Assembly: GCF_006345805.1 (NCBI RefSeq)
Contig: NC_043000.1
Coordinates: 131,316,001 to 131,380,000 of the forward strand
Source of the DNA: Octopus sinensis
Taxonomy: Eukaryota
Direction of reading: 5' to 3'
DNA: 64,000 nt
The position numbers were made by a program, and so were the translations under genes. Below the pieces are notes generated by a model that searched no databases, was not told the DNA's origin, and saw only the letters and a list, made by a program, of their open reading frames with translations. Shown in pieces: positions 23,217 to 53,800 of the stretch (position 1 is its first letter; each line of letters begins with the position of its first letter).

Positions 23217-23926
23217 GTTTAGGACTACACTGTTTAATGTGTCCAGTAAAATGGTGTTTTGAGGGAAACTTGACTGCTATTTCTAGCAAACTCAATGACT
23301 GCAGAGTCTTGCCTCATTTCAAATTTTATACAACACTTGAAGCACCATAAAACTGCTGAAGAGTCCAGGATTAATTACTAATTCCATATATTTTGGGTGA
23401 ACCACCCTTCTGCAGAGAAAAAAGTAGTTAACAAATTAAGTCTGTATATGGCAATCTCTGATTTGATAATGCTTTAACTGCTTAATGCTTGAAATATTTC
23501 TTTGTTTTCTTATACTTCAAACCAACTACAAACACTTTTCTTTCAAAATGTATATTGTCTGGTGCATTGCTTTTCAATAAAACAATTTTTTGTTTCAATT
23601 AACTTTGAAAATAACCAAAGAGTTGAAGGAATTTAATAGCACAGTTTTTGTTTTCTTAAGCTGGTTTTTGTTATATAACCTAACAAAAATCTTCTGTAGT
23701 GAACTAATCAATTAAGGTTTTTAAATGATGGGCTTTGTATTATAGAAGCAGAGGAAAGTTCAGGTGGACTGAGTAAAGTATTATCAAGTTGAATTTTCTG
23801 AGTCAACAAGAAAGTCAATAATAAACACAAGGTCATCTTATACCAAATGGACTGTTATACTAGATCTAAAGAATTTATGTTACTGTATATTTCAAAAATG
23901 TCTGCAAAATATATTTGTTATATATT

Positions 23927-24999
23927 TCAGGGTACAGTACTCGGCCCAATCCTGTTTCTCATCCTCATCTCTGACATAGATGAAGATACAACCAGCAACG
24001 TCTCATCCTTTGCTGATGACACCAGGGTCATGAGACAAATCAAAGACGAGGTGGATACAGAGGCCTTACAAAAGGACCTGACCACCATATATAAATGGCA
24101 GGAAACAAACAACATGTTGTTCAATGATAAGAAGTTTGAACTAATTCGCTACGGAACAGATCAAGATCTGAAAAATACAACAAACTACAGAAACCCATCA
24201 GGACAACAAATAATGGAAAAACAGTATGTGAAAGATTTAGGCATCCACATGGGAACCAACCTAAAATTCAGAGAACACCTTGACTCAGTCTGTCTTACTG
24301 CAAGAAAGTACAGCGGGTGGATCTTGCGCACCTTCAAATCAAGAGATACCTCAACAATGAAAACCCTCTGGAACAGTATGATACTTCCGAGGATTGACTA
24401 CTGTTCTCAGTTGTGGTCACCAACAACAAAGGGCCAACTATCTAAGATAGAATCGCTCCAAAGAAATTTTACCTCATACTTCTCAGAAACGAGGGACCTG
24501 GACTATTGGCAAAGACTCAAAACCTTGAGGATGTACTCAATAGAAAGAAGATTTGAGCGATACCGAATTATATACATTTGGAAAATGATAGAGCAGAAGG
24601 TGCCAAACTTTGGTATCAAAACCTACCACTCACTGCGCCACGGAAGACGCTGCCAGCTGCCACCAATCAACAAAAAGGCTGGCCAGGCAGCAAAAACCCT
24701 GCGAGAATCAAGTCTGTTGGTTCGAGGAGCACAACTGTTCAACTCCATTCCGGTACATGTCAGAAATCTATCAGGATGCAGTGTGGAATCATTCAAATTG
24801 CAACTGGATAGATACTTAAGCACCATTAGAGATGAACCCCATCTCCCAGGATATACACAACGAGCACAAACTGACTCAAACTCGCTCCTACACATGTCAA
24901 ATTTAAGCAGAGAATACAACCTGGCAACCACACCAGACTCTGAGGGTGGAGTCTTCGACTTGGCCTGAGCATGGACTCAAACCCAAATGAAATGAAATG
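23927..24999 (+). mobile_element. 5'-truncated CR1/L2-superfamily LINE, RT C-terminal half with an open ORF
   Basis: Starts at (P)QGTVLGPILF; FADDT, KDLGIHM, IDYCSQLWSP, LKTLRMYSIERR; no stop until 24968; short 3' UTR and (AAATG)n tail. Confidence 0.93.
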
Positions 25000-31719: not shown

Positions 31720-32886
31720 ATACTCACACAGAAGCACTGATAGCCATGAACAAAATAAAAGATTGGTGGTTCACAATTTAGGTCAGAAGTCAAAAGGATT
31801 AATAGTCACTGAAAAAAAAAATGTGATGCTTTTTAAAAAAAATTTTTTATCACAATGTAGCTCTACTTTCAGGAGACAGATAAAATTAAAACCATTCTTC
31901 CATAAATGTATTAGTTTTGACTTGCAAGACTAAGATAGATAAAAAAAAAAATGATATAATGACAATTAGGGAGTAAAATAATTTAGACTACTAATGGGGT
32001 AGGATTCATTATTTTATATTAGAAGTTTCTGTGTCCTATGTTCAAATCCTGCAAGAGTTGATTTTGCCATTCTGGAATCAAATATTGGTTAAGTACTTGA
32101 GTCAATATAATTGTTTATGTTCTTTCCTATAATTGAACACTTGTGCCAATCTTAGGCATCATTTTTGTATTAAAATTTGGAAAAAAAAAAAAAAAAAAGA
32201 AAGAAAGAAAGAAAAAAAAAAAAACTAAATATAAAATGTCATTTTACACTATAAAAAGATATTTCTCAGATGTTTTTAAAAGGAGAAATGTAGGAGAATG
32301 AAACAAAAAAAAAAGTAAATAATTTTTTTTTAAATCAAATAATTTTAATATTTAACATTGTTTCAAAGTTAGAACATTAACCAAAGATGTAAAAGAATTG
32401 ACAAAATGAAATTGAAAATGTTTTTTGTGTAGTTTTTCTTTATACCTATGAAAAATTCTGAGTGTTTGAAAACAAAACAAAAATGAACAGAAAAATTTAA
32501 AGATATTTTTAAATAGGACTAAATTTTACTTTATAAACAAAATTTATAGTAAAATACCTAAATATATTTTCCATATTAATAATAATTATTATAGTCTTAT
32601 CACTTATTTTTATTATTTTATAATTTTATTTGTCTAAATTGATCTTAATCTTCACGATAAAGATACTTGCTTATAAAAAAAACATACATATATAAATTAA
32701 AATTAGCCTTATTTTGAACGGTACCAATTAAGTATGATATTTAGTTTTAATTCAGTATCTAAAGAAAGCATATTTTGAGGAACATAAATTGTTTCTGTAA
32801 ATAAATTAGGTTTTTAGTCTCAAATATTGTTTACAATAGAGTTAACTATATATATAATGAGATGAAAGATAAAAGAATCTTTATTG

Positions 32887-32955
32887 ATCACTACAATCGT
32901 TTCGATTCATCTACCAGTGATCCTTTATGGGTGTAGATGTGTCTCCTCAGGTGAT
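32887..32955 (-). ncRNA. Type I hammerhead ribozyme motif with intact core, sense to SLC34A
   Basis: AUCAC CUGAGGA GACACAUCUAC-(18 nt)-GUAGAUGAAUC GAAAC GAUU GUA^GUGAU: 5-bp stem I, 9 of 11 pairs in stem II, all core bases present. Confidence 0.8.
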
Positions 32956-33234
32956 TTCAAACAGTATCTCATTAAAATAGACTGTTTCACATGACATGCA
33001 TATTTTCTTCTTGGTCCTCAAAGATAGGAACGGTAAATTAATGGATACGGCTTCATTGTTATAGAAGATCAATCACAAAAACCAGATACAAAAAGAAACA
33101 AATATACAATACAGCAAAAAAATATTGATATTCTATAAGAATGATGCAGTACCCACCAATTTGCTATTTCTATCATGAAGACCAAGAGGAAAACAAGTTG
33201 TGTGAAACAGTTTATTTTAATAATATCTCTTGAA

Positions 33235-33340
33235 ATCACCTGAGGAGACACATCTACACTGAGGGATATACCTAAATCAGTTGTGCAGCATCCCATCCGC
33301 AGGGGTTTGATGCTAGATGGGTCAAAATGATTGTAGTGAT
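33235..33340 (+). ncRNA. Inactivated hammerhead copy (opposite arm)
   Basis: Same stem I and CUGAGGA, but GAAAC has become AAAAU (G12A and C15.2U, both at CpG sites). Confidence 0.65.
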
Positions 33341-33457
33341 CAATAAAGTCTCGCCATCTTCCGTTTCTCTCATTAATTACATACCCAATGAACACTGAGC
33401 CAGTGAACATGCTTTACCAGCAAACTACCAGGTGTATAACATAAGATTAGCTAATAC

Positions 33458-33490
<33 letters not shown>

Positions 33491-34908
33491 ATACATATAC
33501 ACACACACACATATACATATATATGTGTGTGTATATGTATATATATTAATGTTTTAAATAGGCACAAAATTTAAGTTTTTATCGGAGTAGGTGGTTGAAT
33601 GAAGATGTGAAGTTTATGCCTTCCTAAAGGTCAGTGATTATGTAAATGAAATGAAAGACCTGGAGATGGGGATTAAAAGCAGTTTGGTTGAAGAGCCAGC
33701 TAATCAACATATTTCATCGCTTATATTACACTGCTTACTACTTCTTGTGAATATTGATTAATGATGTTCATACTTTCCTAGTTATCAGTCATGATATAAA
33801 TGAAGTGAATGAACTAGCGACTGAAATTAAAGAATAAGCTACCCAAGCTTACTCTTTCTCCACGCCAATTTTTTTTTATACATATTATTATATTAAAATA
33901 GCTTGTAAATTAAGAAACAAAATGTTTGAAAATTACTAAATATTCATCTAAGTTATTAATATTACTAGAATTTTTTTTTCTACTCATAATCACTAATAAA
34001 CTAATATAAAGGTAAGCTTCAAAAGATAACTTGAAGAATGACTTCATTTCTTCTGAAGTAAGTTTTTCTCAGCAGCTTTTATCATTCAGCAATGTCAATG
34101 AGATAGTGTCGTTGTAAAATGGTTTTGGAAATAATTGTGCCAGCATTATAGTTCACTATATGCAGCCATTAGCTAACATAAATATATAATGATGAATTAG
34201 TGCAAATCTGTTCAAATATATACATGTGATTACAGCTTTACTTTATACACACAAACATGTATATACATATATGTATGTAGACATATATAGTATACATACA
34301 CATTGATATATGTATGCATATATATATATACATAAATATATACATTATATATCTTACATACATGATCATTAGTTATTCTATTGCGTACTAATTAGGAACA
34401 GATGCATTTATGCACAAGCCTTAATAATAATTAATGCACATAAATACACATCTTAATTTTACTATGGATAGCTTTATATAATGGTATAAACTTCTATATC
34501 TTTCAGTAAAGCATTCACTTGAATAGATCCCCTATATTAGCTCGGTCCTATTATGTTACTTAGATGAAGAATATTTACAAACTGCAGTGCCAGCACCCTC
34601 AATATAACATTTATGCAAGTTCACACACACACACACATACAGACACACGCACCCACACACACCACACAGAGAAACTCATAAGTATATATGTGTGTATATA
34701 TACAATCACACACAATTATATATGTACAGTTGTAGATATGTGACTGTGTATATATAATCCCTTTCACACCTACACAAAAGTTGTAGGAAATGATAACAGA
34801 TCTGCTCTCACATGAGAGAGGGGTGAAAAAAAAAAAAAAAGGTGATTCAAAATTTAAAAATTCCTAAATGAATAATTATTTTATAATGAGCTATTAATTC
34901 CTAAATTA

Positions 34909-35858
34909 TCAACATTTTGTTGTATCTTGTATTAGTCGTGCTGTAGAATGGAAACTTGAAGGACTGTCAGCTCCAGGACTTACACCACAAGAATTATTAA
35001 TCGTACTCAGGCTGGATCCTTCATTCGCTCTTGGCTGATCCAGCTTTTTTTGACACATTTTACAGAATCCTGTGAACTTTGACAGGAACTTGTCCATTGG
35101 TTCTAGTGAATGTAAACAGAGAGGAAGCCAGTCCCAGTTCCTCAATACTTTTGGCAGGACGTTTTCCATTTTTCTTTGCAGAATATTAACAATGATGATG
35201 AAGGCAAGGAGTGGAATGATGATGGCACAAGCTGTGATCAGTGCATATTTGCCAGCCAGTGACAAGGCAAAGACAAATGCTGGAAGCAGGAAAAATGCAG
35301 TCAGTAAATACAGGAAAGCAAACCAACGGTATTTGGCCGTAGTGTTGCCCAACATTTTCGCCAGGTTTATAGGAAGCTTACGCATTACTGGTACTGGATA
35401 AAATATTAAAATGCCAGTTAGATTAAATAAAAGATGGCAGAGTCCAATTTGCAGAGCAGCTTTCAGCTTGTCTCCTGAAGTTGCCATGGCAGCTAATAAA
35501 CCAGTTGCAGTCGTTCCAATGTTGGAACCTAAAGTCAGTGGATACATTCGCTCAATGTGAATGACACCCATACCAACTAAAGGTGTGAGCGTTGATGTGA
35601 ATATAGAACTGCTCTGAAGAATTATTGTTAATATAGCGCCAATAATGATGGCTACATATCCAGTTAGAAATGAACATGGTTTTGGAATGTCAGAGTTTAT
35701 TGTTTTCTTCAAAGCTGAAGCTACAGGTCCACGGAGCATCGAATGAAGCAAGCGTACCATTCCCATTAGACAAAAGACCAACGATAACAGTGAGATGACC
35801 AGCAAAACAACACCGGATACCGAATCATTCCAATTGATATAACTCATCAGACAATAAC
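34909..35858 (-). CDS. SLC34A: SLC34A terminal coding exon (950 nt), second repeat and C-tail ending ...QDTTKC
   Basis: tttcag acceptor at 35859; contains ORF 34909..35847; second QSSS motif, GSNIGTT, KYRWFA. Confidence 0.97.
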
Positions 35859-44800: not shown

Positions 44801-47800
44801 ACATAAAACAAGGATAATATTCTGGCCTGGTATGGCCGGTTTAAACACTAAAGGGTTAATGTACAAATGTCTGGGAAGTGAACAGTGTATGAGTCAGATA
44901 CATGCTTGTGTGTGTATGGAGGGGAGAAAATCAGGTGTAGTGTTGGCGAATCTCGGGAAGCATGGAAGTTTTGAAGGATGCAGTGTTCCGACAACTAACA
45001 ACTGATGCTGGCAGTTTGTTCCATACTTCTGCAACTCTTAGCATGAAAAAAATGTTTCTGCAAATCATGGGAGCTGTGCTGTTTTCTGACTTTGTAAACA
45101 TGTCCACGGGTATTAGACAGGTGGAGTTTGAAAAGGTGCTCAGAGTTATTGTTAGTAAAATGGTTAAAATTTTATGGGTGTCTGGCAGACGTCGGAGTTT
45201 CAATGTATCCATGCCCAGGGAAGTAAGGCGTTCAGAATATGGCAAATGCCTGATGGTGGGTATTCTCTTGGTTGCACGTCGCTGAATGGTTTCCAGACGA
45301 TTAATATCCTGGGCAAGATAGGAGTTCCAGACCGGTGATGCAAATTCCAGGTGAGGCCACACGATAGCTATATAAAGCCTCAGATAGATAGCCAGAGAGC
45401 AGCTCACAAAGGACTTGGTAACCTCCTCTGCTGCAACAACTATTTGGACATAAACTTCCATGCTTCCTGAAATTCACCACAATACATGTTCTTCCCACCA
45501 TTTTTTTTTTTATGAATCATTCACTGTTCACTTCCTGTGCATTATTCTTTGCACTTTTGGCTATACACTGGTCATCAGACATTGAAAAACTAAGCTACAG
45601 GACATATTGTTTACCAGATGTAAATATGAACCACCATCAATCAAATGGAAAGTAATCATTCATACACATGCTTGTATACACAGACAAACACAATGGATTT
45701 CCATATAACTCTTGCTCACCAATTTCACTTACAGGACATTGTCAGGGAGAGGCTTATACCAGAAGATACTCGTGCAAGGCGGTGAGCTGGCAGAACCGTT
45801 AGCACACCGGGCGAAATGCGTAGCCGTATTTCGTCTGCCGTTACATTCTGAGTTCAAATTCCGCCGAGGTCAACTTTGCCTTTCATCCTCTCGGGGGTCG
45901 ATAAATTAAGTACCAGTTACACACTGGGGTCGATGTAATCGACTTAATTCGTTTGTCTGTCCTTGTTTGACCTCTCTATGTTTAGCCCCTTGTGGGTAAT
46001 AAAGAAACATATACCAGAAGATACTCGTACAAGGTACCACACAGAGTTACCAAACCCAAAATCCAACGATATTCTTTAAACATGGAATAAACGAATTTAA
46101 GACCCAAATTAAAATATAATAAATGATATGAAATAAGCAAGATCAGCAGGCTTTAATTTATCCTTAAGGTAAAGTGCCATCAATGTCTTTCACAAAGATG
46201 TCAGTTTATTAACATGGAGGAAGAAACAAAATTTCCTCAATATAAAATCTACCTCACACATAGAAACAACCATTTCAAAGCAAATATATGATTAGTCAAC
46301 CTTCTGTTGGAAATGCCATTGTTATCTAAGACTTAATACCTACAAAATAGCAACAAAACCAAACGAAGAGCAATTGGACACAAAACTGCTTAAAGTATGA
46401 ATTTCAGTATATATAAAAAAAATTTTTTTAAATTGTTCTCTATTAAAATTTCACTAAAAGTTATTTCTAACCAATTAGTAAATTATAGGAACAGAAAAAA
46501 GTGTAAATATTTGTTTATCTATTAATAAAATAAATCTGAAACACTTTGCATCCCTGATAAAATATTTCAGTCGAAGTAACAAAACTTTACAGAGTTATTT
46601 CCCTTAGTCCATATATTTACAAATTAAAGATTAGTAGATTATAGGTTCAAGAATTGAAGTTACAGGGCATAAAGGGACACCACAAAAACAAAACCGATTG
46701 AGTTTTAGACCGTTGTAAACTTACCCTTGACAAATGAGACAATGATACGTATTCGGTCAAATCAAGGTTATATTTGAAAGACATTTTGCTCTTGGTATCA
46801 AAGCAATGTAACTGATCAAGGAACCATATGACAGTGGAACAAACTTCTTTATCCCAGCCAATTTCATGTAATATCTAATTTGCATTTTATATTACACGGA
46901 ATTATTTTCCTGTTTATTTGCTTGAGGTGTTGTTGAATGAATCGAACACAGTAATAATTTTTCAAATCTGGAACTTGTTCTATCAGTCTCATTTGCCAAA
47001 CCATTGTTGCAGGGACATAAACACCAACAACAGTTGTCAAATGGTGATGAGAAACAAAATAGGCTTCTTTCAGTTTCTATCTACCAAATTCACACACAAA
47101 TCCTTGGGTCAGCCTGATGCTATAGTAGAAGACACTTGGCCAAAGTGACATGCAGTGGGACGCAAGTTTTGATGAAATTTTACCTTAAATACCAAGTCTT
47201 TTCTACTCTAGGCACAAGGCCCGAAATTTTGGGGAAGGTGGCTAGTCGATTAGATCAACCCCAGTACACAACTGGTAATTTATCAACCCTGAAAAAATGA
47301 AAAGCAAAGTCAACCTCAACAGAATTTGAACTCAGAACATAGCAACAGGTGAAGTACCACAAAGCATATCGTCCAGTGTGCTAACAATTCTGCCAGCTCA
47401 CTACCTTGAATAATAACGTAAATAACCCAAGCATTCATGAAGTTAAATACAAAAACAAATAAATGAAGTTATAAAAACAACGCTATTGAAACCAAGACGA
47501 CAAAGCTTTGACGTAAAACTAAAACAATTAAATAATTAACAAGTTATAGACTGCTGTTATTTAAACTTCAAAAGAACTAGATTACAAAGTTTTATTTTCT
47601 ACTAACCAATCTAAAATATATTTTTCTTTCGTAACAAATGTTTTAGTACCAGAATGAAGTAGAGGTGGAGATGAGATAAATCTGCAATATGCTGTAGCGT
47701 CTTTAAATTTTTGTTTTAATATGTGTCTTTCTTTTTGTTTACAGAAATATTTCACCATTTTGTTTTATTAGCAACATATTTTTACAGGAGGAGAAGAAAG

Positions 47801-50800
47801 AAAAACAACATTAAAAGGATAAAAGAAAAAACTAATAAGAATAAAATGCTCGTAACTACCTCACCAAGAAAACAACGAAAAAGAGAAAAATGGAGGAAAT
47901 TAAATATGGTTCTACACCTGAGAACAAATGGTGTGTTTATCTGTACCATGTGGACATGATTGCAAAAGCATTGTAAAGAATTGCCAGCAACACTTGCTAA
48001 AATTATCTCCAAACTTTTTAACTTCCTAACAAACTACAAGTACACCTGAATGATAACTTTATTGATCACTAATAAATAAATTGAGTACTGGGGTCTGTCG
48101 TTATCACTGTTTGACAACCACAGATGTAGCTCTGGTTAAATATCGTTTTTGTGGATAGTATATTATCATCGTTTAACATCTGCTTTCCATGGGTTGGACG
48201 GTTTGACTGAAGACTAGCAAGCTAGGAGGCTGCACCAGGCTCAAATCTGATCTGGTAAGGTTTCTACAGCTGGATGCCCTTCCTACCACCAACCACTACG
48301 AGAGTGTAGTGGGTGCTTTATACATGGCACCGGCATGGGGGCCAGGCAGGTGGCATTGGCAATGACCACACTTGAACAGTGCTTTTTACAAGCCAATGGC
48401 ATGGAACCAGTCAGGTAGCACTGGCATCAACCATGCCCAAATGGTGCTTTTTACATGCTACTGGCACGGATGTTGGTCAGGCAGTACTGGCATCGGCCAC
48501 GACAATGATATATAATGTGTAATATATAAATTTTCATTTAAATATCACAAATCAATTAGTAGTTATATTTAATTATAAGATTTTGAGTATAGATATATGA
48601 AATATGTATTATTTGTTAATGAAACTTATTAATATTATAATCGTTTTATAAATATAATGTTTTTATTATATTTATTCTTAATATTAGTATATATTATATG
48701 TTATATTCAAATTTTATTGTTAAAATAATTTTTTGATAATAGTAACTCTATCAAGAAATAAACTTAATAGAACTTTTTCATGAAATCAGCACCAAAGAGG
48801 TTGATTTACCCTTGGCAAGACTAAAAAGCCACCACAAGCTCTGTGTTGCCACAGGTCAATTCAAATTTAATATATGTACATACACACACACACACATAAA
48901 TATTGAACAGTGTGAATGAGTGCTCCACATGGAAATATTGGTACATATCTCCATTTTGAATGGTATTATCAACAGTTTCATGTGGCGAACAATTGTGAAG
49001 ATTACTTCACATGAAACCATTGGTAGCCTTGTTAAACCACTAAGTATGTACACACACACACTTATATTTTACATTCTATCTTTTACTTTTTGCAGTCATT
49101 AGATTGTGGCCATGCTGGAGCACCACCTTGTAGGATTTTAGTTGAATGAATTAACCCCAGTATTTGTTTTCTTTAAAGCCTGGTACTTATCTTATCAGTT
49201 CTATTGCCAAACTGCTAAGTGACGGGAATGTAAAGACACTAACACCAATTTGTCAAGTGGTGAACGGGGACAAACACAGGCAGAAACACACACACACACA
49301 TGATGGGCTTCTTTCAGTTTCTGTCTACCAAATCCACCTACAAGGCTTTAGTGAGGCTGAAGATAGTAGAAAACACCTAAAGTGCCACGTAGTGGGACTA
49401 TACCAGGAACCATGTGGGTAGAAAGTGAACTTCTTACCACACAGCCACAACTGTATCTATAAGTGGAATAACATACTCTCTTTATACTCTTTTACTTGTT
49501 TCAGTCATTTGACTGTGGCCATGCTGGAGCACCGCCTTTAGTCGAGCAAATCGACCCCAGGACTTATTCTTTGTAAGCCTAGTACTTATTCTGTTGGTCA
49601 CTTTTTGCCAAACTGCTAAGTTACGGGGACATAAACACACCAGCATCAGTTGTCAAGCGATGTTGGGGAACAAACACAGACACACAAACATACATGAATA
49701 TATACATATACATATATATGATGGGCTTCTTTCAGTTTCCGTCTACCAAATCCACTCACAAGGTTTTGGTTGGCCCAAGGCTATAGTAGAAGACACTTGC
49801 TCGAAGTGTCACGCAGTGGGACTGAACCCAGAACCATGTGGTTCGTAAGCAAGCTACTTACCACACAGCCACTCCTATGCCTACATATAGAAGGAAATAT
49901 CTTAAGTTGGAGTAACAGCTGAAACAGATATTGAAGCTCAGAGACGATACAAAATCAATAAACCTGGACAGATGTTGTACTGCAGACCTATCAAAACATG
50001 ACAGCATGATAAAAACAAAGCAAATGATAGAGTTGATGATGATGATGATGATGATGATGATGCCAATAGCAATAAGGAAACAACTAAAAAATAAGATTTA
50101 ATGCTGTCAATTCCAGAATCACAATTTAAAATTGATGCCAGATATAATATGTACCATAAATGTTTTAAAGTAAACAACATTTATTTGAACAATAGAGACA
50201 AAAATAAATAAAACTATGATTAACTAGAAATCTATGAATTTGAATATGACTTTGTTTCTGCCAGCCGTACAGTTGCATCCATTGGAAGATTGATTAACCC
50301 AAATTAACTCTGAGTAGAAGAAATGAGCAATAACATAATCAGTGACATAAAACAATAAATTGAAAATTAAACCTATGTTGTGCACTTGTATTTCACTACT
50401 GCCCACAAGGGGCTAAACACAGAGGGGGCAAACGGATTATGTCGATTACATCAACCCCAGGGCGTAACTGGTACTTAATTTATCGACCCCGAAAGGATGA
50501 AAGGCAAAGTCGACCTCGGCGGAATTTGAACTCAGAACGTAACAGCAGACAAAATACGGCTACGCATTTCGCCCGGCGTGCTAACGAGTCTGCCAGCTCG
50601 CTGCCTATGTTGTGCACTTGGCTCACCAGAAATTTTCCTTCTGTTCACCAGCTTCATATGCTGTGGGCAAACTGATATATTTTGCTTGGATGTATTACGA
50701 GATGATTTATATGCTTTAGCATATAAAACAGGAAGATCACTTACAAGGTTTATTGAACAGCAGATTGATTGAATGTTATAGAGAAAGGTGTAATTACCAG

Positions 50801-53800
50801 TGCAGACCTCCACAGTAAGTAACAAGCAAACACTCAACCAATTGAACATATCATGGACGGTGGCAGCACTAAATGCTCTCCGGAATTCATCCCTATTTCC
50901 ATACTGGGCCAGGGAAACAATCGTATTGGTCACAGATGTCCCAATATTGGCACCCATTATAATTGAAATTGCAGGCTCCACATCGATCACTAGTAAAGAC
51001 AAAAAAAAAAATTAATAAAATAGAAAAAAAATATCAAATGTAATTTTAAAAACAAATTTGAATCTCATAAATATGAATTAATTCTTCTGAAAGAAATATA
51101 AGATATTTATGAACACATTAAAAATTACACATTTTTAAACTATAAATTGATTGAAGATCTCTAAATAATAGTAATTATCATTATTATTATTATTAATTTT
51201 TTGTTAAAACAGTTCCAGTCTTAACTAGTTGCAGCCATATAAATAGAGATATAGAACATTATGGTTCCAAAATATCTAATACTGATAACAGTTGGTTTTC
51301 AAAATCCAGTGATGTTGTCCTTAAACTTCGTATATCTCAAAACCTTAGATGAGTGAAAAGAGCAGAGTCTCCATCTAAATGCTAAGTTCTACTTAATAGT
51401 AATAAGTGTGATACAGAGAGGTCATCAAGCTAAAGAGCTTGTTCTAACAATAAGCCCAGGTTCAAATTTGAAAATACTCACGTAAGACATGCAAGCATAG
51501 AAAATGTATAAACAGTAATTAAAATATGTCTTCCTGAATATTTCTCAGCTTTTCAGTAAACATTACTGTTTTCATTTTTATGTGTTATAAGTTCTACCTA
51601 GGAATAACCATCTGCCTAAATTCTTTATGTCTTTATGAATACAATAAAGAAAATCATGTCACAAGACATTAGCCAATACATTAAATGTTAATTACTATAA
51701 TTAATTGCTTGTTCATTTGGTTTTATGTCCCTTTTTTTCCATGCTAGTATAGGTTAGATGAATATATTAGATGTCCTTCCTGGTCTCCTAGCTGATACCT
51801 GTTTTTCAAGTAAGGGATAGTTCACTCTGCAGGTTATCAATGACACAGAGCCAGCAGACAACCCATGTACATGACAAGCTCCTTTCAATTTTTATCAACC
51901 AAATCCACTTACAAGGCTTTGGTTGGCTTGAAGCTACAGTACAAGATGCCGAAGACACACTGCAGTGGGACTGAACCTGAAATCACATGGTTTCAAAACG
52001 AACATCTGAACTACGCTGTTGAGAGAAATTATGAAGTTAAATACAAAATGCTCTCTCTCTTACATGTTTCAGCCCTGAGAATGTGGCCATGCTGGGGCAC
52101 TGCCAGTACAATACAACATTTTTATTTACTTTGTCAATTGGTTTTTCTTCAATCTGTCTTTCAAAACAATTAGAGAAAAGATATATTCAAATCTATAGTT
52201 AATACTAGTTTCACTTTACTATTAATTCTTGCATAGAAAACACAGTTGGCACAAATAGGGTTTGAATTTCAACCCCAAAACGACAAAATTAAACAGGACC
52301 CAGTTAAGACTGCCACTCTACTTTATCAGTCCTATGGCTATGTGTAAAGGCTGTAATAAATAGAATGTAACGTAAGACGTACTGTTTGATGCTACCATTG
52401 TGACCACAATGGACGTAGACGTACTTGAGCTCTGCATCAACACAGTTGCAAGGATGCCAATCATAAGACCAGTCAAGGGATTTTGAAGGAGCACGTGATT
52501 AGACATGAAACCACCTAGAAATACAATGAATAAAAACAATATTACAAATTCAACAAGCATAACTCGTATACATGCTCAAACACACACACACAAACAAAAA
52601 AGATATATAGGACCAAAACACCAGGCACCAGTTTTGATTAATAGTTGGAATGAGGAATGGTGACTAATAGTAGATGGAATCACAATGATAATAATGATGA
52701 AGAAAAGGAGTGGGGAAACATTATCCAGGAACTGAATTTTCTGAATCATGTTATCAGACACTGAAAAGTGAGATGTAAATATGTAATTTTTTACCTTCTA
52801 ATTTTATACTATTACTAGCAGTATTGCCCAGTGTTGCTTGGGTTTGTTTCAACCCTTTAGAATTGGAATTTTTGCAAAGTAAAAATTTTGCATTATGTAG
52901 CTTGTTGTTCTCTTTAAGTGAACATTTTTCTGGTTGAAATACACCGAAAAATGGCGACACAGCAGTCAAAAAATAGTTAATAGGGATTTTCATAGAAAAA
53001 AAAGCACCTTTTTGATGTAAATAATTTTTGGTGTTAACATGGTCCGATTTGAATTTTATCTTCTACAGAAGGAATAGCAAGCCTTCTATCATACTCTCAA
53101 TTTTGGTCAAAATGCGCCGCAGGGTCTCAAAGGAGATAGTGTTAGTTGAAGGCTACCAAACCTGCCATATACAGACAACTTCAGCTTTATATATATAGAG
53201 ATTAGATTAGACATGTGTCTATTAAACCAGTAAGTGTTTAGGTGGACAATGGAAGTTTCTTATTTCTTTATTGCCCACAAGGAGCTAAACATAGAGGGGA
53301 CAAACAAAGGAATTAAGTCGATTACATTGACTCCAGTGCTTAACTGGTACTTAATTTATCAACCCCAAAAGGATGAAAGGCAAAATCAACCTCGGTGGAA
53401 TTTGAACTCAGAATGCAATGGCAGATGAAATACCGCTAAGCATTTTGCCCGGCGTGCTAATGTTTCTGCCAGCTTGCTGCCTTAACAATGGAAGTTTCTG
53501 CCTACTTAAAGTGGAAGTTAAATTTTCCTCAGGTCATACCTTAGGAAAGAAAGGAGGGTATGCAGACAAACAGACCAAGGCAGAAACGCATTTGATCAGG
53601 TGTCGGCTTGATAAACGTTGCTTTAGGGCTAAACAACAATTAGCATGCCTTCAAATGAATTATTTATAGTATTTACTTTTTAATTCAGATAGCCAGGCCT
53701 AAAATTATTGTGCTTAATCAAGAAAGGAGCTGAAATACACACTAAATATTTAACTTAAGCTCATGACTGATCTGGAAATAGTTAGATGCCAATGGTTCCA

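Follow-up and report, generated by a model that had tools for sequence, protein, structure and literature searches.

The 64,000-nt window considered here (Octopus sinensis contig NC_043000.1, positions 131,316,001 to 131,380,000, with all coordinates below counted from its first letter) carries on its minus strand the last coding exon of an SLC34A-like Na/Pi cotransporter gene and, 1.53 kb downstream of that exon in the direction of transcription, an insert at 32855-33375 in which a hammerhead-type ribozyme motif faces a degenerate relative on the opposite strand. The original prediction for this locus placed the motif at the probable 3′ end of the SLC34A mRNA and saw in it a retroelement-derived switch. 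On the evidence set out below the insert is probably the relic of a hammerhead-carrying mobile element of the Penelope-like-element or non-LTR (long terminal repeat) retrozyme kind, and the elements of the locus on which the argument turns are as follows.

32855..33073, minus strand, sense on the gene strand: left copy of the element, from copy alignment, blastn and nhmmer
33074..33123, strandless: A-rich spacer of 50 nt between the 5′ ends of the copies, the loop of the predicted hairpin
33124..33375, plus strand, antisense to the gene: right copy of the element, with insertions of 37 nt and 7 nt relative to the left
32887..32955, minus strand: type-I hammerhead-like motif with intact core, from sequence, descriptor scan and Rfam RF00163
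33235..33340, plus strand: degenerate hammerhead of the right copy, from sequence and descriptor
32931..32960: left half of a 30-nt perfectly complementary block, its partner at 33230-33259
32880..32885, minus strand: AATAAA of the left copy, 5 nt past helix I and 24 nt before the 3′ end of the element
33342..33347, plus strand: AATAAA of the right copy, at the element position equal to 32885-32880
33211..33221, minus strand: ATTAAAATAAA, the first canonical poly(A) hexamers past the stop codon, within the antisense arm
33454-33546, 34260-34352 and 34622-34668: microsatellites (AT)n, (TA)n and (CA)n, much of the stretch from stop codon to insert
34909..35847, minus strand: last coding exon of the SLC34A-like Na/Pi cotransporter gene, stop codon at 34911-34909

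The arms, to judge from their alignment, represent one element present twice and not a ribozyme plus its mask. The copies are 76% identical over 212 aligned columns, with indels of 37, 7 and 4 nt between them, and point to a unit of ~220-250 nt. Both begin with ATTGAT and end with CTCATTA, the left copy running from ATTGATCTTC at 33073 to its CTCATTA at 32855, so that the left boundary formerly put at 32858 has to be moved outward. In each copy the unit ends 24-27 nt past AATAAA and the cut site lies 36-39 nt before the unit's 3′ end; the CUGAGGA boxes of the two are ~290 nt apart on opposite strands. The largest indel, that of 37 nt, is located in loop 2, which measures 18 nt in one copy and 57 nt in the other. 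The perfect 30-bp duplex over CUGAGGA that had been noticed earlier is real (100% complementary, and spanning the 5′ strand of helix I, the CUGAGGA box and the 5′ strand of helix II), but the inverted repeat to which it belongs is far longer than that, about 220-250 nt per arm. Identity is unevenly spread over the unit. The longest identical run, of 32 nt, covers the 5′ side of helix I, the core box and the 5′ side of helix II (permutation P=0.004), and a second, of 22 nt, takes in loop 3, the cut site, the 3′ side of helix I and AATAAAG; the 20-mer GATTGTAGTGATCAATAAAG around AATAAA is the same in both copies. Identity focused in this way on the ribozyme is what would be expected if the ribozyme had been selected within the element family, and the spacing from AATAAA to the end of the unit fits the 3′ end of a polyadenylated transcript that was retrotransposed.

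Read along the minus strand the left motif has the order AUCAC, CUGAGGA, helix II, GAAA, C, GAUU, G, UA/GUGAU (the slash marking the cut). Helix I pairs 32955-32951 with 32891-32887 over 5 bp, and the core boxes follow as CUGAGGA at 32950-32944, GAAA at 32903-32900 and GUA/G at 32894-32891. Helix II (32943-32904) is made of the strands GACACAUCUAC and GUAGAUGAAUC with an 18-nt loop between them, and comprises, outward from the core, the pairs G-C and A-U, the mismatches C.A and A.A, and 7 bp of CAUCUAC/GUAGAUG. Helix III, within 32900-32893, has 2 bp (A-U and C-G) closed by GAUU. All the invariant hammerhead positions are kept (C3 to A9, G12 to A14, A15.1, U16.1 and H17, here A), as is the G10.1-C11.1 pair, and cleavage is predicted after A17, between 32892 and 32891. 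An intact core at 32955-32887 in the sense of the gene strand had been claimed from the outset, and both the sequence and the Rfam register bear this out; the cut site at 32892/32891 likewise holds as a position, by the layout of the core. In the right copy G12 has become A at 33324, just as had been reported, and C15.2 has become U at 33328. Its helix I is that of the left copy, with CUGAGGA at 33240-33246 and GUA/G at 33333-33336, and its helix II, of 10 positions with a single mismatch (33247-33256 with 33314-33323), is the better of the two. The descriptor matches this copy only once GAAA is swapped for AAAA, and the copy had no match in Rfam even in a 141-nt search.

How far does the left motif rise above what chance would offer? 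A relaxed type-I descriptor was run over both strands of the window and over 200 dinucleotide shuffles of it; in the window it finds the left motif alone, and in the shuffles it finds 0.08 matches per window, with at least one match in 14 of the 200. By itself the motif is thus suggestive and mildly beyond chance, and it stands clearly above chance once the right copy is taken into account, since all three helices recur there and the agreement of the two is focused on the ribozyme parts. In a 106-nt search Hammerhead_1 (RF00163) came top of 4227 Rfam families and aligned over its full model, 1-45, in the register of the original prediction, at 13.6 bits and E=1, below the gathering score of 34 bits. 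Over the 64-kb window Rfam at gathering thresholds gave no match, and in a 1.2-kb Rfam search Hammerhead_1 was absent at E<=10. A second descriptor match, at 10357-10234 (minus strand), has a helix I of 4 bp only and is at chance level, 0.2 being expected per window; it lies within an unrelated SINE-like (short interspersed element) repeat that ends in a TG/TA microsatellite.

The history that we consider most probable is one in which two copies of a unit of ~220-250 nt came to lie head to head with 50 nt between them, each having carried, ~35 nt short of its 3′ end, a type-I hammerhead and behind it an AATAAA that belonged to the element. That ribozyme would have served the element, most likely in the processing of its transcript, and not the host gene. 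Both copies appear to be decaying, the left with its core retained and two base pairs of helix II lost beside that core, the right with its helix II retained and its catalytic G12 lost. Selection on this asymmetry between an intact and a dead member finds no support: with ~12% change per copy some 1.6 changes are to be expected in a 13-nt core, and the probability that a core is left untouched is ~0.19 per copy. The asymmetry needs no selection; at 76% identity, neutral decay would be expected to remove one core base from one of the copies.

Folding predictions speak to the present state of the motif. The isolated 75-nt motif has a minimum free energy (MFE) of -11.7 kcal/mol, no better than its shuffles (z=0.16), in a structure that buries GAAA in an AAUCG-AAA-CGAUU hairpin; the hammerhead fold, at -8.4 kcal/mol, accounts for 0.12% of the ensemble of the isolated motif. 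By eye, the sequence past the 5-bp helix I could form no more than a weak UUU/AAA closing stem, and loop 2 differs between the copies. The 536-nt segment as a whole folds into a long imperfect hairpin of ~250 bp, at -222 kcal/mol versus -117 +/- 7 for shuffles (z=-15), and in this context helices I and II have a probability of ~0 and C3, G5, A9, G12 and A17 are paired to the antisense copy with a probability of ~1. The masking of the core by the antisense arm, as first proposed, is accordingly upheld in silico. In any read-through from SLC34A the antisense copy would be transcribed first, and the core would be sequestered in the predicted hairpin. Read-through by RNA polymerase II would then yield an imperfect hairpin of ~250 bp that locks the ribozyme, and any effect on the mRNA would come from double-stranded RNA and not from self-cleavage. 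The folds support masking as an ‘off’ state, with a mechanism of release not being evident. That the motif cleaves finds no support in its Rfam score (13.6 versus 34 bits), its stability, its share of the ensemble, its broken helix II or its 2-bp helix III, and a second sense copy with which it might act as a dimeric ribozyme is absent from the window. We infer from these features that the left motif is at present inactive, and this is a prediction only, because hammerheads with a helix III of 2 bp can cleave as monomers (PMC7229834).

That last point is one of several that weigh against the account just given: 2-bp helix III hammerheads of invertebrate retrozymes can cleave efficiently as monomers (PMC7229834), and predicted inactivity has to be set against this. 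A single-insertion origin of the pair would need gene conversion, or constraint that followed insertion, to account for a 32-nt perfect block in arms that are 76% identical. Target-site duplications were sought at 32855 and 33375 and none was convincing. A pattern allowing 3 mismatches, blastn with word size 7 and nhmmer found no further copies in the 64-kb window, and multi-copy family status accordingly remains a provisional assignment drawn from the two copies examined. Finally, an open reading frame (ORF) for a reverse transcriptase (RT) or GIY-YIG domain adjoining the insert was looked for and is absent. The only RT fragment near is ORF 23847-24968, ~8 kb off, which is of LINE (long interspersed element) type and has an RVT_1 match only.

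Could the insert have been taken over by the gene beside it? In the switch that was envisaged, use of the proximal signal at 33221-33211 would leave the hammerhead downstream, to cleave the nascent RNA and aid termination, and use of the distal signal at 32885-32880 would have the poly(A) tail removed unless the antisense arm masked the core, with ADAR editing as a possible means of tuning. We regard a co-opted switch of this kind at the SLC34A 3′ end as very unlikely. In its favour the motif has an intact core and runs in the sense of the gene, a perfect 30-bp block lies over it, identity along the arms is non-uniform (P=0.004), and a long imperfect duplex is, on general knowledge, a plausible ADAR substrate. 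The first canonical hexamers past the stop do lie within and just past the insert: scanning of the minus strand confirms the AATAAA sites claimed at 33216-33211 and 32885-32880, there being no other AATAAA from 35696-35701 down to the former, neither AATAAA nor ATTAAA between the stop codon at 34909 and 33221, and hence no canonical hexamer for 1.69 kb past the SLC34A-like stop. The observation that these are the first such signals is correct, but it is unremarkable, for stretches of at least 1600 nt free of both AATAAA and ATTAAA occur seven times on the same strand of the window. Variant hexamers (such as TATAAA and AGTAAA) occur on the gene strand from 34885 onward, upstream of the insert, and the idea that the motif is the probable 3′ end of the mRNA is without support, as is an mRNA reaching the 1.5-2 kb to the insert. 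Nor can the distal AATAAA be credited to the gene as had been supposed: it stands at the matching place in both copies and so belongs to the element. Against the switch stand also a helix II disrupted at the core, a helix III of 2 bp with no second sense copy for a dimer, a hammerhead fold that is rare in isolation and practically absent in context, and the loss of G12 in one copy, which is what neutral decay predicts. A related and even less probable possibility is that the inverted pair has been retained since it inserted, serving the SLC34A 3′ region as a gated ribozyme. The 30-bp block would then preserve at once the catalytic half and its mask, unwinding or A-to-I editing would release self-cleavage, and release would alter 3′-end formation or mRNA stability; the non-uniform conservation fits this and selection on the ribozyme at the level of the family equally.

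Two further accounts leave the ribozyme without a role for the gene, and each is improbable. According to one the insert is a foldback or MITE-like (miniature inverted-repeat transposable element-like) DNA transposon, or a local inverted duplication, with a hammerhead-like motif present by chance or capture and no link to retroelements. The arms do begin and end at common points, inner as well as outer, and fold together into a single long hairpin, the outer termini TAATGAGA...TCTCATTA have TA-rich flanks, and about 7% of shuffled windows satisfy the relaxed descriptor by chance. However, 76% identity together with a 37-nt indel makes the arms very diverged for the inverted repeats of one element, conservation tracks the hammerhead helices and core and not the termini, the placing of AATAAA, 24-27 nt short of each outer end, is in keeping with a retro-transcript, and opposite-strand pairs of hammerheads are documented as the outcome of Penelope-like-element insertion (PMC4209133, PMC8557442). 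According to the other, which is compatible with a mobile-element relic and which we hold to be unlikely as an effect on the host, the hairpin alone matters: if transcribed, the ~250-bp imperfect duplex would lend itself to A-to-I editing or to small-RNA production, and the stability or localization of SLC34A mRNA could change with the ribozyme uninvolved. The folding energy of the hairpin and the location of the insert past the gene's stop codon, as its strand reads, speak for it, but transcription of the region is unsupported, and the matches to microRNA (miRNA) families in Rfam are far under threshold and fall on microsatellite palindromes or on the generic hairpin. Those sub-threshold matches (the TA/CA microsatellite palindrome at 33485-33546 and the generic hairpin) were set aside as artefacts. 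The retroelement-like origin of the repeat, which was already part of the original prediction, is borne out by the two copies and by their match to published features.

Searches around the element turned up several things that can be recorded here. The window has no direct, head-to-tail repeat of the unit. A scan of metagenome contigs with 18-mers gave 8 matches, none of them with related flanks, a number that chance would seem to account for in so large a collection, and a 20-mer scan of viral contigs for the element gave 0 matches. A stretch of 16 nt at 48056-48071 (minus strand), just downstream of a SINE-like repeat (~48170-48350), matches the element's 3′ end exactly (the AGTGATCAATAAAG region) and has unrelated sequence on either side; either the agreement is due to chance (E=0.014) or the stretch is a very small piece of a further copy. 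The antisense right arm is spanned from end to end by an ATG-initiated ORF of 113 aa (33069-33410, minus strand), which is almost certainly spurious; a search of 5.8 billion predicted proteins brought up no homologue of it. The ORF at 23847-24968 (plus strand) has its RVT_1 domain at E=1.9e-7 and resembles a LINE-type relic. Another, at 44931-45461 (minus strand), has no Pfam match, aligns to the C-terminal part of the former (23% over 77 aa, E=1e-7) and, standing between SLC34A-like exons, is probably intronic.

The identity of the host gene rests on ORF 34909-35847 (minus strand), to which Pfam PF02690 matches with E=1.6e-10 as the C-terminal Na/Pi cotransporter exon, and whose best homologues are SLC34A-type proteins. 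An ORF at 50532-51002 (minus strand) has a sub-threshold Na_Pi_cotrans match (25.8 bits versus a cutoff of 29.1) and is probably an upstream exon of the same gene, the span of which would then be at least 16 kb. Among the best 120 protein matches the closest relative of the exon, at 71% protein identity, is a 538-aa protein carried by a transcript-like contig of 2356 nt (L001, Logan SRR27666068), the 3′ untranslated region (UTR) of which is at least 560 nt long, is AT-rich and extends beyond an AATAAA ~110 nt past the stop; it is unrelated to the stretch downstream of the SLC34A-like exon here. No orthologous locus came out of this search, there was no homologue from a named cephalopod among those best 120, and the source lineage seems to be absent from the protein collection searched. 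On the far side of the insert from the gene a tract of 44 A occupies 32181-32224 (plus strand).

The hammerhead-type motif 1.5-2 kb past the SLC34A-like gene is real and of a known kind, and is best read as part of two retroelement copies that lie head to head and are decaying; on this reading the insert is an ordinary transposon relic, and the regulatory switch is speculation. Invertebrate genomes hold hundreds to thousands of Penelope-like-element and retrozyme hammerheads, frequently paired on opposite strands, and the present locus adds a further decaying case close to a gene. There is a caution in it for those who scan genomes for ribozymes, in that a core found intact in a copy of a transposon does not show that it works for the host, and a poly(A) hexamer beside such a motif may be the element's own. 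Were it to be true that mRNAs end at the cut site, or that the insert is conserved, the locus would be a rare instance of a transposon-derived, antisense-gated ribozyme in mRNA 3′-end formation.

A known case of a hammerhead past a stop codon is that of rodent Clec2 genes, where a discontinuous hammerhead in the 3′ UTRs, an observation that goes back to Martick et al. 2008 and is cited in PMC4209133, reportedly cleaves and lowers expression. Its halves are said to be hundreds of nucleotides apart, its helices stable, and the whole conserved among species. As in Clec2, the core here is past the stop and on the sense strand and could in principle split the coding region from the poly(A) tail; unlike that of Clec2, this motif is in one piece, is only weakly structured, is carried by a transposon and has an antisense copy to mask it.

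Another comparison is with metazoan non-LTR retrozymes. They consist of tandem repeats of ~170-400 nt with type-I hammerheads and are expressed as circular RNAs (PMC7229834), and they have been proposed to be derivatives of Penelope-like elements (bioRxiv 10.64898/2026.07.22.740005). The unit described here resembles them in its ~220-250 nt, its low GC content, its type-I hammerhead, its 2-bp helix III and its tetraloop. It differs in that the units are inverted and not head-to-tail, in the sizes of helices I and II, which depart from the canonical 6 and 4 bp, in having no recognizable contacts between loop 1 and loop 2, and in that homology runs ~35 nt beyond the cut site without wrapping to the start of the unit.

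There are also the hammerheads of Penelope-like elements, and we infer the assignment to that neighbourhood from the features in common. In metazoans the helix I of these ribozymes measures 4-5 bp, their helix II is unusually long and their G10.1-C11.1 pair is conserved (Cervera & de la Pena 2014, PMC4209133); the motif here is likewise of type I, with a helix I of 5 bp, a helix II of 10 positions in the better copy and G10.1-C11.1. The minimal or small palindromic helix III of the published motifs implies action as dimers, a single minimal motif having shown no detectable cleavage when tested in vitro (PMC4209133), and the 2-bp helix III here comes with the self-complementary ACGAUUGU (G.U pairs included). 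There are departures, namely that no base is left unpaired between positions 9 and 10.1, that loop 2 is very large at 18 and 57 nt, and that the window has neither the RT or GIY-YIG ORF nor the pseudo-LTR arrangement of autonomous Penelope-like elements. TATATATATA adjoins the left end of the insert and on the right the (TA)n array at 33454-33546 begins ~80 nt past it; a bias towards (TA)n targets is known mainly from the Naiad clade, which is without canonical hammerheads (PMC8557442). The missing tandem and ORF do not exclude derivation from a Penelope-like element, because most published motifs are solo or truncated. A cephalopod genome has been reported with Penelope elements and 235 Hammerhead_1 matches (PMC6962438). 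Most copies described are solo and truncated, dual minimal hammerhead ribozymes lie ~100-700 bp apart on opposite strands (PMC4209133), and an inverted, 5′-truncated copy beside a unit is a characteristic structure of insertion (Craig et al. 2021, PMC8557442). The locus downstream of the SLC34A-like gene is alike in having its hammerhead near the 3′ end of the unit, its opposite-strand motif ~300 nt off, and a solo or truncated copy that is free of any ORF.

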